From NCBI GenBank assembly GCA_964035545.1, contig OZ037768.1, positions 23,779,319 through 23,843,318 on the forward strand: 64,000 bases of DNA, read 5' to 3'. The position numbers and the translations under genes were made by a program. Shown piece by piece: positions 31,547 to 40,029 of this stretch (the first letter of the stretch is position 1; the number at the start of each line of letters is the position of its first letter). The DNA is from Bugula neritina. Its lineage: Eukaryota > Animalia > Bryozoa. A model generated the notes under the pieces. That model was not told the DNA's origin. It saw only the letters and a program-made list of their open reading frames with translations, and did not search any database.

Positions 31547-34500
31547 TTATTGACAGAAGAGTACACTGAAATGGTGCTGATACTCTTCACAATGATCTCC
31601 CGGGGCAAAGGAAGTGGTGTTTCTCTGCTTCACATTGATGTCTTCAAAGTACTTGTACGTAGTATAGAAGATGTCCGGGTCACCTGACTCTTTAGCGACA
31701 CTGAGAAACTTCCTCGGCTGCATTTGATTGGCCAGGCCTACCGACCTCAAGTACCTGATAGCTGTGAGCACCTGCAAGTATAGTCATGTGACCAGTCATG
31801 TGACCAGTCATGTGCTCATATAATTCTATGAATAATAAACCTGCATACCATCCATACACACCTGTTATACATACTATAAACACCTGTTATACATACTATA
31901 TACACTTGTTATACACATATAAAATACATATATTACATATATATAAACCTAAAAAACACAGATTAACTCTAGTAAACAGTCTAGACTGTAGATTCTATAC
32001 TAAGCAAGTGGTAACAGCCAGTTAAACTAAATTAGACAGCAAAATAAACAAAATAATCCACAAAAATATTTCAACTATTTTCTTAAAATTTTCCTTGCTG
32101 GAGGTTGATACAGACATTCAATCCCTCAAATAGTTGAGGATTTGTTAATTTCACTGCATCTAGTCATGAAATAAATACAGTGCAAACTCAAAGCTACATT
32201 ACCTAAACCCATGATTCTAGCATGAGATCCTACCATGACATAAGCACAGAGAAAGGGTAGCAGAACGGGAACTAACCTGATGCTTGGAGAGGAAGACCTC
32301 GACAATCTCGTCATGTGCAGTGCCCAGTCGTTTGAGCATATCCAAGGCTATCTGAAAGGCGGGTGGGTAGACATTCTGCAGAGAGAGGAGAAGACAGGCT
32401 AAGTGTTTAGAGTCGGCCATGACGTGGTACTGAAGGAACTGGTGGAGTCTGAACAGCTGGCCACAGTCCACCAGAGTGTTCACCAGCAACTCGTACAGGT
32501 AGAAGTGGACGGGCAGGTCAAACGTCTGCAAGGAGGCGATGTACTCCACCATGACGGATATCGGGAAAGAGGAGTTATTCTTCTCATCTCTCCTAGCACG
32601 CTGCTCGCCAAAGATGGGGTAGAATACATGTGTGTAGATGTCATCCTGTTGTATGACGCTGACGGCGTTGGCAGCGAGCCAGGATTTGGTGAGAGCCAGC
32701 ACCTCAAAGTCGCTCTTCATGTCTTCATTATAAGCATACACCTGGGGAATACAGCAGCAGCTGAGAAATATGACAGCAATTCAATTGAGGGGGTTGAGTG
32801 AAGGAGTGGATAAAGAGGGTAGTGTGAAGGAGTGGATAAGGAGGGTAGTGTGAGGGAGTGGATAAGGGGGGTAGTGTGAAGGAGTGGATAAAGAGGGTAG
32901 AGGGAAGGAGTGGATAAGGAGGGTAGTGTGCGGGAGTAGAAAGGGGGGGTAGTGTGAAGGAGTGGATAAGGGGGGTAGTGTGAGGGAGTGGATAAGGAGG
33001 GTAGTGTGAAGGAGTAGAAAAGGAGGGTAGTGTGAAGGAATACCTGGTTAAGTCTGTTGAATATCTCTCCGATGGTAGTGAGGCTAGACGCAGTTTCAGG
33101 AGTGACTAGACTGCGCACCACGTCTAAGATGAGAGACTTAGCACCAGCCCGATGTAGTAGCACCTCTATCAGCAGACACCTAGTATCAGAACACAGGCAG
33201 ATGATCTTGCAATTTGTATTTCTAAATATACAAAAAATAACTATAGTAAAAATACATTAGCCAGACAGAGCTTAGCAGATAACCTTAATATTTGGTGAAG
33301 CAAATCAAGCAATTCTGTTTCCAAACAAAACGTTTATAGAGAACGTCCACACCGCAATGAAGTCTACATACTTGTCGGATATCATGTCCACAAAGCCCGG
33401 GAGAGAGATCTCCGTCTTCCACATGCACCCCTGCACGGCGTCAATGATAACATCCGGCTGAAAGACTATCCAATTGCTGGAGTACATTTCATAGGCGGGT
33501 TGAGCTGCCGCCATTGCTGCCGGGCTGCTGGAAAAGGACGGGACAAAGGGGGGCATCTGAGTCACTGGTTTCATTGGTAGAGGTGCTATTAGGGGCTGCT
33601 GATGTATCGCTATCTATAATTATGTTATCTCGTTGTAAAGAATAAATAAATACATTTGTTACATCAACATATTGACAACAAATAAATTTATAAAAAGTGC
33701 AGTTGCTTAGTAAAATGAAATGCAAATCTCTTCAAAGCAGTAACATAAATTTATTCACAATGACTTTGTCTAGATAGTTGCAGATGTATAGAGCTCACCT
33801 GTTGGTCACAGACTGAGGAGAACTTGAGGTCATACAGAAGTGTTGTCTTGGACTGCAGATGATGAACCAGTATCAAACTGTCTACTATGTTCACTTGAAA
33901 GTGTCCTGTCGAATTGAACTTTAGAATGTGCGTCTTTGTAACAACTTTTTCTCGAGACAGTCTATACAACACGAGTTCCGCCGGCTGGGAGCTGTGCGTG
34001 TCCTGCTTCAAGGTCATGATGTACACCTGGTTGTAGATAGTCGCGAGAAACGCATCTCGTCGCAGCAATGTAAGCTTGGGCTCAATCGGGTAGAAGATTA
34101 GCTCCACTTCTAGTTTGTTGTACTTGTACAAGGTGCCGTTCTCGTACTGGAACGGATAGATTAGGTTACCATATGTACCGGAAGAGATGATAAGGTGCTT
34201 GCTCTCCTTATGCCATAGGGACCAGTTGACTAAACCAATACTCATGGTCTTTGTACACCTGACTGCCTTCTTCTCCGGTTCAACCTCATAAAACTCGACA
34301 CCAGTGTCTGTGACAAATATTATTTCTGTGTTAGAGGCCCAAAAGAAATCAGTAATGCGAGTTGTCTTTCCCTTACACGTCTGACAATAAGGTAAACTTT
34401 TAGCATCTTTTGGAGAGTTGATGAAGTCCAAGGCGTTGGGTGCTCGTTGTAGAGCTAAAATCTGTTGGTTTGGCGAGAATCTCACAGCCGCTATATCACC

Positions 34501-34725
34501 TTTGTCTTCAACTCGAAATGAAGTTGACTGCCCAGTGCAACCATCAAACATTATGATGCCACCAACTCCATTAGAGCGAACAGCAAATACTTGCTGACTA
34601 GCATCATCGAAAAATACGCTAACATTAGAAGTTACAGGGTCGAAATACACAGGAGAACTAGAGAGTTGTACACAGTATGGTTTCTGGTTTGAGGTGTTGT
34701 TATCATCCAAGTTGACTAAAGCCAT
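31547..34725 (-). CDS. RMC1: Regulator of MON1-CCZ1 complex (C18orf8/MIC1)
   Basis: Exons 34725-33799, ~33613-33372, ~33178-33044, 32741-32278 and 31771-31547. Motifs: VFFDDASQQVFAVRSNG, MYSSNWIVFQPDVIIDA, LHQFLQYHVMADSKHLACLLLSL, ALDMLKRL, F.PGDHCEEY. Confidence 0.93.
32790..33040. repeat. 27-bp purine-rich minisatellite (GTAGTGTGAAGGAGTGGATAAGGAGGG)n filling an RMC1 intron
   Basis: About 9 copies starting within a few bases of the donor at 33043. Confidence 0.92.
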
Positions 34726-36590
34726 TGCCACTCTTTGTAGAGTCTGTTGACAGTTGATGAATAAGTATTAAAAGAACAGCATTCTCTACAAAAAAAAGAA
34801 AATCTTTTTAAGCAACTTATATACAGTCTTTAGAATTTAAAATAACATTTTTATGGCAATGGACTAGCATTAATAACATTTATACTACACTGCTATACTG
34901 TATTGTACTTGTAGGGATAAAACTAGTAGACTAAAATTATTTTTTATGGCACTCGCCATGAAATTATCATTAATGTAAATCTAAATGTTGTAAATGTAAA
35001 TCTAAATGTTGGAACTTAGAGTCTAACAAGTAACAAGTAAAACTAACTGTAAGTGTAACTAACTAACTGAGTTACATTTACAATTACTGTTAGTGTTACA
35101 CTTACATTTACTGTTAGTGTTACTGTTACTGTTAGTGTTACACTTAGTCTTACAGTTACTTTAGTGTTACTGTTAGTTTTAGAATAAGAACTAGAACTGG
35201 AAGGCGAACCAGCAAGCAAAAGTTAGCAGCAAACTTCAATGATTCAGATTAAAAAATACTGATACACAAATAATATTTGTAATAATTCTAGTTCTTGTAA
35301 GAACAATATTTACTATAAGTATAAGCAAAGGAAGTTAAAGCAAAGTCAAAGTGAAAGTGTAAGCTTGCTGAATTATATATTTCAGATTTCAGCGAATAAA
35401 TAGGTAGATTTAACCTGCCTCATACAATGACATGTATATACGAAATTGCGTGCGTTTTAGTAACGTTGCAAGACTAAGGTCAAGGTTAATGTTCATTATT
35501 CTGTTTTTCAGACTCGCCTATTAGTATTAGATATTAATGATGAAGCAGTAGTACAACTGCATCAACATGAGACTGAGTCATGATTAGGATTATCATATTA
35601 TGTGATTTAGTAATACTGTTGACTAAGTAAATATATAAATGTATAAATTGTATGTAATTAGTTATCATTCGGAAAAAAAAACATTAAATAATAGTTGTTG
35701 CCAAAGGATAACATTAACAATCACAATGACAATCACAATCACAATGACAATGACTATGACTACCATGACTATCACTATGACTATGAGTATGACATTGAGT
35801 TTGACTATCACTTATCAGTATCACTATGAAATAGAATATGAGATTGAGTGAATAACATTTGCCTTAACTTATAACTATAAGTATAAGTATAACATTAACT
35901 ATAGGTAGATTACTAATAATACTAATTGAGTAATAGTTATAGTAATAAGTATAACTTAAACTATAAGTAGAGAAGAATTAGAAAGCATGTTGATATTGAA
36001 TTTAATATTGATAATCATATTAGCGGTATCCCGATTATCATATTGATAATGAAATTTAGTATCACGCACTCACTCTCAGTTTGACTGTAGTGTAGTCTGT
36101 GTATAAGAATGAGTATCAGTATCACTATGACTATCACAGTTTCAGTATGAGTGTTAACTTTAGGTAACCAATATCAAAATGGTACTGATAATCATCATGA
36201 TAATGCCAATAGGCAATAGGTGCTGGTCATTTCAAGCACAAGTCGTTTCATACCCACTTTTCAGGTCGTTTTGTACACATCTGGATGGAAATTGGATTTT
36301 AATTAATTTGCACAAAATATTTATGTTGATTTATAATTTTTATATTTTTTCTATTCAATACTTGAATTTTACTTTGTATTTTAATATGGCCAGGGAGTTG
36401 CTTGCACTATTATGCAATTTATAGAGGAGAAAATGAAAGTGTCTGAATAATTGCTATGTGTTTATATCTTTTTGATTTCGATGTTTCACAGGGAAGGTGT
36501 ATTAGCAAGTAGCTAAATGGTTTAGTAATTGTATTTGATTTGATTTTATAATATATCTATTTGTTATAGAGCAACTGGTGTCACCAGTGA

Positions 36591-36977
36591 ATGGTTATGC
36601 ATGAAACTGTTGGCTGTTTACTCGTTGCATTTCTTTGGGGAATAACAAATCCTTTGATGAAAAGAGGCGCTGCTGGCGTTGAAACTGTGTCAGATTCTGC
36701 TAACCAATCACAATTGAGAAGAGTATTTTCAGAACTCAAGTACCTTGTCATCAACTGGAAGTACACCCTCCCGTTTCTCGTCAACCAAGGAGGATCACTC
36801 TTGTATTACTGGACGCTGTCATCTAGTGCGCTGTCGGCAGCAGTGCCATTGACCAATGCGCTGACTCTGGTCATCACTGTGCTGTTTGGAAAGATTTTTG
36901 GAGAACAGTCAGGCGGAATATTACTCTATGTTGGCATCACTCTGGTGTTTGTGGGAACTGCAGTAGCCAACTCCTAA
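36591..36977 (+). CDS. TMEM234: Transmembrane protein 234 (single coding exon, 128 aa)
   Basis: LLVAFLWGITNPLMKRGAAG, LVINWKYTLPFLVNQGGSLLYY and LSAAVPLTNALTLVIT are diagnostic TMEM234-family motifs. Confidence 0.93.
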   Translation: MVMHETVGCLLVAFLWGITNPLMKRGAAGVETVSDSANQSQLRRVFSELKYLVINWKYTLPFLVNQGGSLLYYWTLSSSALSAAVPLTNALTLVITVLFGKIFGEQSGGILLYVGITLVFVGTAVANS

Positions 36978-36988
36978 GTCCAGTAACC

Positions 36989-38843
36989 ATGGCTACAGAT
37001 ATAAACATTCCAAACAAAGCTCTAATAGGTCCTTATGATTATCACTTTCTTAGAGCGGATAAGAAGTTACTAGATTATTATAAGTCAGCTTTAAATATTA
37101 AACAAAATAAAAAAGATCGAACAAAGCTAAAAGAAAGCTATGAAGAGCTTACTGCTCAGAATAACCAAGATGGCTATCTGACCTTGACATTCGATGACGT
37201 GTCATTTCTATGTGAATGTCTCAACGGGAAGAGTCTACCAGGTGCCAGAGTTATTATATTGTTAAAGTAGAGAAGTTGTTGTTCCCTGAAATATTGTGTT
37301 TTTTTCACTGACATGGAAGTTATCATCTCTTGTAAAAGTATTTTATTCAAATATTCGTGTTTTAATCAAAACCAAATTTTTTTTAAATATTAAACTAAAT
37401 TGTCTGTCAAATCCAATTATATACAATGATTTTATATTGAAACATTATTTTCTAATGCTTGGCTTTAAGCCATCACTTGTCATAAATTAATTACTATGCA
37501 TAGAATTGGAGTTGCTTCACCTTTTTGCTGTATTGTACACTTAAGTTTTTGTTTGCATATTTCGAGTAGAATTTATAAATATATATTATATTATTAGAAA
37601 AGAAAGAGTTGCCCCGAATACACCTGTATGAGCTGATGAAGTATTGCGTCCTAGAACTTCCCTCTCCTCCTTCCCTAGAAACGGTAACTCTGTCTGTAAC
37701 AGTGAGACATTCTGATATAAACTGGCTTATTTCATCACATGTTAGCCTTAGTTCTTTGTGCTGTAGTCACCAGAGTACGAGGCCCGCATAGCTAGACTGA
37801 GGTTGTTGGCTGCTGAAGCCGAGTATCAGAAGATGACTCAAAATGTTAGCGGACATGTGAGTGTGTTTATATACATGTGTCACTACAGTGTGTGTATACA
37901 TGTGTCACTACAGCTTGTGTATTCAAATGTAGCATTACCCTCAGCTCATTACTGTAGTATACTATGTGCTTTATTTAACTTCAGGTTTCATTCTGTTTTA
38001 ATGTTTTACTTTAGGCTGTCAAACAAGAGAACATTGGGCAGGAATGTGAGTCCTTTACGAATATTTATACTATCACTGTTACTGATACTATCACTACTAC
38101 TACTACTATTACTACTGCTACTACTATTACTACTGCTACTACTATTACTACTGCTACTAATACTACTGCCACTGCTACTGCCGCTGCTACTGCTGCTACT
38201 ACTACTGCTATTACTACTAATGCTACTACTACTAATGCTACTACTACTAATGCTGCTACTACTACTACTGCTACTAATACTGCTACTAATACTACTGCTA
38301 CTAATACTAGTAACTGCTGCTAATAATATTAATACTAATGTCATTATTTTATTATTTTTAAGTTGCATTTATTTCCGACTGTGTTTCATCATACCTACTT
38401 ATTAATATATTTCAGTACGAAAAATGGACAGTCAAGTTACATTCATGTTCAACTTTGTGCTCACTGTGGTTGGTGCATTCGCCTTTGGTTACAAGGCTGT
38501 TGAATACAGCCTGGACACACCTAATCTTTCCCTGGTATGTACTTTCACTGCTACTTTGTTTTTACTACTTTATACCAACTGCTGATGTTGTTTACATTTA
38601 TTCTTGTTTAATATTTGAACAATTTTGATGGTCTTCAAAATCTATTATTCACAATTAAGTTTTTCAAAAAGGAGTTGTCCCACTTCTTTACCAAAGAGGA
38701 GGTGAATTCAAGATACACTTTGTAGCTAATGCATGTAGTTAATAACTTGCTATTCTAACTTGTAGCAACTGACAGTGGCAGTAACTTTGGCTACTCTAGT
38801 CTTCTTTGCTGACATTTATTTTATCATCAAAGATTATGTTTAG
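36989..38843 (+). CDS. TMEM199: V-ATPase assembly factor TMEM199/VMA12 (~218 aa, 6 exons)
   Basis: Exons 36989-37241, 37598-37683, 37767-37856, 38015-38045, 38416-38534 and 38766-38843 join in frame. Motifs: LYELMKYCVLELP, SPEYEARIARLR..AEAEYQKMTQNV, then two TM helices FNFVLTVVGAFAFGY and LATLVFFADIYFIIK. Confidence 0.88.
38075..38320. repeat. (CTA/CTG)n trinucleotide microsatellite in TMEM199 intron 4
   Basis: Directly visible; source of the poly-Leu and poly-Ser ORFs. Confidence 0.95.
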
Positions 38844-40029
38844 TCATACAACATATATACTGATAGTGAGTATGTCAAAGATTACTTTCGTTTTGTATTT
38901 AAAATACTAGACTGTTTTATCTGTACTTTTATCACTTGCTTATCACTTACAATAAAACTGATTACAAACTAACTCACATGGATTTTCAATTTGCTTTTTA
39001 CAATCATAGTGTATAGTTGTATCTTTATGTTTTTTTTATTTGCCTCGCAAAGTCTAACAACAAGACTGGCCCCTCATTCACACTTTGCTGTACCATACGC
39101 CGTAGCAGCGAATATCAACCATTTTTGTTAGCATCTGGACTGAATCGTACCCTGGTATAAAACACTCCTATTGGGCAGAGTTGATATGCTACTAAGATTT
39201 AAAGAACATTTTCAGCTAGTTTATTTTAATAGCTTATTGTTGATTTAATTTATCAATTCCATGACTTCAAAAGATTAAAAAATCTTTATTTGGCTTGTTT
39301 AAAGTAAGCCTAGCGTAAAAATCAAGCTTTCACCAATTGTAAAGTTTTTCTTTCACTAGACTGGGCTTGGGACTGCACTTCATCTGGGCCACGGGTACTA
39401 ATTCAATGGCAAGGCTAGAATGACTCAGTTTGACTCAGCTATATAGCTGGCTGCTGTCAGCTATTAAGCTCTCACATTAGAGAATAGCGGTTATTTTAAG
39501 CTATTTACAGCAAGTAGATGACAAATACAATTGGTAATCAGTATTCTACGAGGCATAGACCCACAAGGTAGCTATTTTGTTTTACATTATTCTATATTCA
39601 AGTTTTGTTCTTTTGATGATTTATAGTGTTGTAGCTTCAATGTAAATAATGATATTTCTTGTATTTATGTTTTTGTATTACTGCCAGTTGATCATGTATC
39701 ATATAGTTAACATTGTTTAATATGATAAAACAATGTTATGTTATGTAAAATGTAGATAAAAACTAATAGATATAAGAGTATTTTAATACTGCATAAGTGA
39801 AGTGTGTCAGGGTACAATGTACATGATCAAGGATTGCTGGATTGGTTCCTTGATTTTCAAGTTTATTTGTTTGAAATGCTAGAAATATAGTGTACACTTT
39901 TTTCCCCTCACTTCAAGAGCCTAAACGCCAAATAAAGTTTGGGTTTTGAGGTATTGATATGGTGTCACACCATTGTGATCAGAACGCCGTTGGTATTTGA
40001 GATTTGTTTAGCCTTTATAATTTTATTGA

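Follow-up and report, generated by a model that had tools for sequence, protein, structure and literature searches.

A tightly linked TMEM234 and TMEM199 share one trans-spliced transcription unit in the bryozoan Bugula neritina and may be read by leaky scanning

True dicistronic nuclear messenger RNAs (mRNAs) of animals, such as that of Drosophila stoned, are read by leaky scanning or reinitiation, and viral termination-reinitiation needs an overlapping or nearly touching stop and start codon together with an upstream motif that pairs with ribosomal RNA (rRNA). Here, we compared with such systems a pair of genes in a 64,000-nucleotide (nt) stretch of Bugula neritina DNA on contig C4 (the window, within which all coordinates are given), where TMEM234 ends immediately upstream of TMEM199, the homologue of the V-ATPase assembly factor Vma12/Vph2. 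Spliced-leader (SL) trans-splicing and multi-gene transcription units have been described from a scattered range of animal phyla, among them nematodes, tunicates, rotifers, chaetognaths and ctenophores (PMC12460157, 2025), and the operons of Ciona and Oikopleura can exist without intercistronic DNA and without an AATAAA (PMC1488885). We found that TMEM234 and TMEM199 are one transcription unit and that B. neritina uses spliced-leader trans-splicing, here at about 36569/36570, placing the leader at the 5' end of TMEM234. A full-text literature search found no report of spliced-leader trans-splicing or of multi-gene transcription units in Bryozoa, nor of a connection between TMEM234 and TMEM199.

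The tight pairing itself, which had been noticed in a first-pass annotation of the sequence, was confirmed. As described there, the first open reading frame (ORF1, TMEM234) ends in TAA, an 11-nt spacer follows, and the TMEM199 ATG stands at 36989 in the context ACCATGG; another TAA in the ORF1 frame follows at 36984-86, the frames of the two ORFs differ (398 nt from ATG to ATG), TMEM234 is intronless with internal ATGs (five were counted), the AATAAA comes after the TMEM199 stop codon, and there is neither room for nor sign of a separate TMEM234 poly(A) signal. ORF1 matched the Pfam family PF10639 (TMEM234) with an E value of 3e-35 and 121 bits against a cut-off of 30.1, over positions 2-111 of 113, and its homologues were 48-62% identical to the TMEM234 of the window. 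The TMEM199 gene model was searched exon by exon against PF11712 (Vma12), with the Watersipora orthologue P0013 standing in for full-length work; searched singly, exon 3 scored 27.3 bits (cut-off 25.5) and exon 5 scored 20.6 bits, and P0013 scored 75 bits at full length. A Pfam match of TMEM199 exon 1 to TRIP4_3rd was weak (E 0.14) and was disregarded; the peptide of this exon is kept in 10 relatives. Both genes are single copy in this genome, so that TMEM199 must come from this unit, the animal's sole source. Differences between strains were 12 synonymous versus 3 conservative in ORF1 and 7 versus 3 in TMEM199 exon 1, a synonymous-rich pattern which indicates that both frames code for protein and places TMEM234 under purifying selection.

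RNA evidence was drawn from Logan contigs of four runs, which show paths and not molecule ends, single molecules or levels, and which were ~96% identical to the window, suggesting that the RNA came from another strain or a sibling lineage. In run X2, a 1072-nt contig was unbroken over 36576-37239 (TMEM234 ORF, spacer and TMEM199 exon 1) and then omitted 37242-37597, 37684-37766, 37857-38014, 38046-38415 and 38535-38765. The five TMEM199 introns predicted in the first-pass annotation were thereby all borne out by RNA joints, four of them GT..AG as listed and the one by the 31-nt exon 4 listed two places off. The X2 depth tables for 36576-38787 held no other contig, so no unspliced form or competing path was kept, and the contig path shows that the RNA is spliced and crosses the spacer. 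Overall, three runs from two samples gave contigs whose 31-mer paths spanned the spacer of 11 nt. Run X1 contributed a 470-nt contig over 36576-37014 together with a spliced exon 1-2 contig, and its TMEM199 contig was no deeper than its TMEM234 contig (49 versus 63). In a second species, the independently assembled contig L031 of the Joint Genome Institute (JGI) equals the genomic contig L028 minus five GT..AG introns and contains TMEM234, a 29-nt spacer and all of TMEM199. The earlier claim that both ORFs lie on one transcript was thus upheld by spliced RNA paths in both species; a mature spliced RNA with both ORFs was found at the level of contigs, not of single molecules.

Three irregularities were seen among these contigs. 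An X1 contig of low depth at 37654-37774 (11, versus ~40-49 for the spliced forms) passes through intron 2 and reflects a minor quantity of unspliced RNA or DNA. A break between X1 contigs at 37014/37058 was considered as a sign of a branch at 36984 and rejected, being in the wrong place for such a branch; it probably reflects polymorphism. At ~508-516 of L031, an A-run in TMEM199 exon 1 has one extra A relative to genomic L028 that puts the sequence out of frame; the probable cause is a mistake in sequencing or assembly.

The contigs with a TMEM234 start, from all three runs, matched the window from 36576 and carried 8-31 foreign letters ahead of it. The 30 foreign letters in X2 comprised 24 leader letters and 6 letters in place of reference positions 36570-75; because these six differ from the reference at 3 places, the joint was fixed only within a few bases. 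The T content of the 20 nt before the AG of this acceptor was 0.55, within the range of cis acceptors. An origin of the leader in a nearby upstream exon was rejected, since the 30 letters do not occur in the window at up to 3 mismatches, and the full 30-mer was not found anywhere in the genome. The first 20 letters of the leader had 5 exact and 2 one-mismatch copies in the genome, versus 0 for a reversed control. Six of these seven copies, on contig C3 (31.46-31.63 Mb; loci L019-L024), constitute family A; they read AAAAG/GTAAAT and have a conserved upstream (promoter) box and a conserved, foldable downstream part of ~150 nt. Family B comprises at least 17 SL RNA gene copies on contig C8 (11.85-13.14 Mb; loci L037-L044) that are 76-83% alike and have a different, length-variable leader; they share with family A the donor (AAAAG/GTAAATATCA) and the body, in which stem changes are compensatory. 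The multi-copy leader, the GT donor and the conserved box and downstream part indicate that these copies are SL RNA genes, and no Rfam family matched them. In nematodes, the SL2 leader has a special role. The seventh copy of leader A (L018; C2:10831158) keeps the box and the leader but diverges directly after AAAAG and lacks a GT donor; it could represent either a defunct SL RNA gene or a trans-spliced RNA that was retro-inserted. The first-pass annotation had proposed splicing to the CAG at 36981-83 just ahead of TMEM199; a leader is used at the 5' end of TMEM234 (~36570), which that annotation had not suggested, and none was seen at that CAG.

Conservation of the linkage in related taxa, which the same annotation had suggested as a check, was found by homology searches and contig look-ups in 10 relatives besides B. 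neritina. Spacers in these 11 taxa ranged from 5 to 81 nt: 65 nt in L001, 20 nt in L002, 27 nt in L003-5, 13 nt in L006, 5 nt in L007-9, 42 nt in Watersipora subatra (L026; GCA_963576615.1, OY755160.1), 81 nt in L027, 29 nt in L028-31, 18 nt in L033 and 34 nt in L034-36. None of the spacers contains an ATG, and they are not alignable. The TMEM234 proteins of the linked taxa are 50-62% identical to that of the window and the taxa are therefore far apart; the same tight linkage in 10 further taxa means that the arrangement is not chance. A more distant TMEM234 (L010-12; 48% identical) is not beside TMEM199. The frame relation between the two ATGs was 0, 1 or 2 depending on the taxon, and a fusion by read-through or frameshift was rejected on this ground, in agreement with the first-pass annotation.

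Two existing annotations were at odds with the genes found here. At the Watersipora locus, the public annotation lists TMEM199 only, and an intact TMEM234 ORF of 131 amino acids ends 42 nt upstream. An older B. neritina TMEM199 model (P0024) has no exon 1 and begins with a wrong-frame peptide; by eye, it is a near letter-for-letter match to exons 3 to 6 of the window. Gene finders therefore need to allow such units.

Features of the locus are compiled in Table 1. Two TMEM199 introns contain simple repeats, namely a 25-nt tandem repeat in intron 3 (37863-37922) and an imperfect ACT-type microsatellite of ~270 nt in intron 4 (38067-38337).

Table 1. Features of the TMEM234-TMEM199 unit and its upstream neighbour (window coordinates; UTR, untranslated region).
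Feature	Position	Strand	Evidence or remark
RMC1 first exon, divergent neighbour	33751..34787	-	ATG 34725; PF21029 E 1e-38; mRNA match ends 34787
RMC1-to-acceptor stretch, presumed promoter and discarded outron, with six-base-periodic tracts	34788..36552	+	
T-rich tract and AG, trans-splice acceptor before TMEM234	36553..36569	+	acceptor ttgttatAG, joint ~36569/36570
5' UTR of the two-ORF mRNA, 3' of the leader	36570..36590	+	contigs from 36576 onward
TMEM234 coding sequence, intronless, 128 amino acids	36591..36977	+	stop TAA 36975-77; PF10639
Spacer GTCCAGTAACC, 11 nt, without ATG; holds candidate internal acceptor CAG (36981-83)	36978..36988	+	
TMEM199 exon 1, start ACCATGG, A at -3	36989..37241	+	contigs unbroken 36576-37239, then splice
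TMEM199 exon 2	37598..37683	+	joints 37239>37596 (cut +2) and 37682>37766 (cut +1), each GT..AG
TMEM199 exon 3, start of Vma12 domain	37767..37856	+	PF11712 E 4e-6; RNA joints
TMEM199 exon 4, 31 nt	38015..38045	+	joint 38045>38416 GT..AG; upstream joint listed 37854>38013, two places off
TMEM199 exon 5, first transmembrane stretch	38416..38534	+	PF11712 E 5e-4; RNA joints
TMEM199 exon 6, coding part, stop TAG 38841-43	38766..38843	+	joint 38533>38765, runs X2 and X14
3' UTR with the unit's only poly(A) signal, AATAAA 38951-56; 3' end approximate	38844..38975	+	contigs reach 38939

We favour, at a probability of about 0.5, translation of TMEM199 from the two-ORF mRNA by leaky scanning, on the strength of the start-codon contexts and of a candidate internal acceptor that resembles ordinary coding sequence. 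The TMEM234 start has a pyrimidine at -3 in 9/9 linked taxa despite their diverged 5' UTRs (in the window, tgaATGg with T at -3), and the TMEM199 start has A at -3 in 11/11 taxa. Control starts had a purine at -3 in 4/4 cases, comprising RMC1 (3/3) and the unlinked TMEM234 of L010. Each out-of-frame ATG in ORF1 opens an ORF of 2-23 codons that ends before the TMEM199 ATG. According to this proposal, the primary transcript would start within the 1.8 kb shared with the divergent gene RMC1 and the RNA would end at the single AATAAA after TMEM199. The contigs show that its 5' part is cut off at the acceptor and swapped for a leader, at least 24 nt long, whose SL RNA genes lie on another chromosome, and that the five TMEM199 introns are removed, leaving a stable leader-bearing RNA with both ORFs. 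TMEM234 would be read from the first AUG, kept in weak context, and TMEM199 by ribosomes that scan past this and the other upstream AUGs. The latter are weak in context except for one, and the out-of-frame ones would, through their short ORFs, let scanning resume, so that ribosomes could initiate at the strong AUG 11 nt past the TMEM234 stop codon. Internal trans-splicing may add a minor extra route.

Several observations weigh against leaky scanning. ORF1 was not depleted of ATGs: a synonymous shuffle over 8 taxa gave 12 out-of-frame ATGs versus 13.4 expected (P 0.36), and led us to reject the depletion that a codon-order shuffle had hinted at in three taxa. Internal ATGs number 0 in L007 and 1 each in L002, L026 and L036, and 5 in B. 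neritina. Upstream ATGs were weak in 28/29 cases, mostly as a result of the amino-acid make-up of a membrane protein; this composition inflated a naive Fisher test (P 4e-7), and a corrected null gave 0 out-of-frame ATGs in purine context versus 2.6 expected (P 0.057), so that only the contrast between the two start codons was kept as evidence. Reading of a second long ORF in this way is uncommon in animals, and, to our knowledge, all other trans-splicing animal groups resolve tight same-strand pairs by means of a leader. Translation of TMEM199 from the two-ORF mRNA is, moreover, a prediction from sequence.

Some of the same facts point to a leader-resolved operon, which we regard as possible though doubtful. 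In such an operon, the leader would be joined a second time, to the CAG at 36981-83 or to some other AG close to the stop codon, to give TMEM199 a leader-capped mRNA of its own, and the two-ORF RNA would be a precursor or would serve as the TMEM234 mRNA only. The machinery is present, C3 carrying 6 SL RNA genes of one family and C8 at least 17 of the other, and the normal number of ATGs in ORF1 agrees with an operon. In 4/11 taxa (the window, L001, L003 and L007), exactly 5 nt separate an AG from the TMEM199 ATG, and the spacers of Watersipora and L003 hold T-rich tracts plus a CAG, that is, good acceptors. Operons of Ciona mostly have no intercistronic DNA, their upstream cistrons have no AATAAA, and unresolved dicistronic complementary DNAs have been seen (PMC1488885). 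A leader at 36984 was not seen in B. neritina; since assemblers clip short side branches, one joined there would be invisible in the contigs, which are thus unable to decide between leaky scanning and an operon. The quality of the acceptor tells against the operon: of the 20 nt that precede the CAG at 36981-83, only 20% are T, versus 45-65% at seven other acceptors of the locus (six verified by RNA and one inferred), and in this respect the CAG does not stand out from the 21 other AGs within ORF1. Furthermore, in L006 the TMEM199 ATG has no AG within 54 nt, and in L007, L033 and L036 the only AG is formed by or lies at the stop codon. The X1 depths (49 for TMEM199, 63 for TMEM234) likewise tell against an internal acceptor. 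As TMEM234 lacks both a 3' UTR and a poly(A) signal, any internal cut would be at the expense of a TMEM234 message. In two species, the RNA was assembled as the fully spliced two-ORF form, and an operon would leave the conserved weak start of TMEM234 unexplained. Three further searches came back empty and are uninformative on this point: the joint of leader and TMEM199 in the L028 species had 0 matches in JGI metagenome contigs, the 21-mer leader alone had one chance match there, inside an unrelated contig, and no retrocopy with such a joint was present in the species' own genome.

Other explanations account for less of the data. Termination-reinitiation of the classical kind, as put forward in the first-pass annotation, is a poor fit to an ORF1 of 124-158 codons and to spacers of 5 to 81 nt. 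It is improbable that the locus consists of two overlapping units, with a promoter and start of TMEM199 inside the TMEM234 ORF and a two-ORF RNA that is a read-through serving TMEM234 only. Nothing direct speaks for such units; contigs are unable to show transcript starts. ORF1 is constrained as coding sequence (12 synonymous versus 3 conservative differences) with no conserved non-coding element evident, L007 has a spacer of just 5 nt, survival of the linkage in 11 taxa is hard to explain for independent genes, and the TMEM199 contig of X1 was no deeper than that of TMEM234. We give hardly any weight to an artefact, in which the path was stitched from separate molecules, or to TMEM234 as an untranslated relic that acts only as a long leader. 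A contig over two genes does not prove a single transcript; however, 31-mer paths bridge the spacer in three runs, which represent two samples, and a different assembly of another species agrees with them, and TMEM234 is the sole genomic copy, has kept 48-62% identity and is under purifying selection. 

Returning to leaky scanning, we propose, more tentatively than for the B. neritina locus, that bryozoans may own an SL system and yet leave this pair unseparated. Programmed leaky scanning on one leader-capped mRNA would then yield both of these unrelated membrane proteins, and this state may have been kept across cheilostome families.

The divergent upstream neighbour RMC1 occupies the same position in L003 and L007-9. 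In B. neritina, RMC1 contigs carry 22-24 unmatched letters past 34787, after a T-rich tract and an AG; the letters were not displayed, and their length is as for the leader. If they are leader, RMC1 and TMEM234/TMEM199 would be a divergent pair trans-spliced on both sides. No trustworthy RNA was found in the stretch between RMC1 and the acceptor (34788-36552), where the contigs placed were repeat look-alikes with non-canonical joints, and no locus-specific RNA was seen at 35435-35581 or 36317-36463. This absence fits a discarded outron, without proving one. Six-base-periodic tracts found by Tandem Repeats Finder (TRF) at 34970-36140 draw very deep contigs from elsewhere, again with non-canonical joints.

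These results add a further phylum to those with spliced-leader trans-splicing, through an RNA-backed and conserved example for which both the leader sequence and the leader genes are given. With no 3' UTR on the first gene and a second acceptor that is weak or absent, the unit also offers a test of true two-protein mRNAs in a trans-splicing animal. The first-pass annotation had further suggested that TMEM234 works with V-ATPase assembly; the linkage hints at this and the idea stays a hint only. Partners in the operons and dicistrons of other animals are often functionally unrelated.

Compared with known systems, the bryozoan unit shares features with several. In humans, proteins of the same two families (PF10639 and PF11712) are encoded by separate, unlinked genes, unlike the tight pair described here. 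Viral termination-reinitiation of the calicivirus or influenza B type resembles the bryozoan unit in that the second ORF begins only a few bases past the stop codon of the first, 11 nt in B. neritina and 5 nt in L007; unlike in the viral type, bryozoan spacers reach 81 nt and are unalignable, and closeness of stop and start is not a conserved feature.

The resemblance to operons of leader-using animals is closer. As in Ciona intestinalis, in Oikopleura dioica and in the SL1-type operons of C. elegans, genes on the same strand are co-transcribed, and, as in the leader-resolved operons of the Ciona type, there is almost no intercistronic DNA, the upstream cistron has no AATAAA and a dicistronic RNA is detectable (PMC1488885). 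In Ciona, Oikopleura and SL1-type operons, the upstream gene retains its own 3' UTR and poly(A) site and the downstream mRNA has been shown to carry the leader, whereas in the bryozoan unit stop and start are 5-81 nt apart, there is no such 3' UTR, the leader was seen on the first cistron only, and several taxa have a weak downstream acceptor or none.

With the dicistronic genes of the Drosophila stoned type, the unit has in common a single capped, spliced and polyadenylated mRNA with two unrelated ORFs in different frames, a weak first and a strong second start codon, and a short spacer free of ATGs. The classic cases have a first ORF nearly free of AUGs, which holds for bryozoan ORF1 only in some taxa, and, unlike them, the bryozoan mRNA is also trans-spliced. 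The first ORF is not free of ATGs, at odds with the dicistronic type, and the leader on the downstream cistron that would mark an operon was not seen, in contigs that would not have displayed it; the unit works either as an operon of the Ciona/Oikopleura type or as a dicistronic gene of the Drosophila type.

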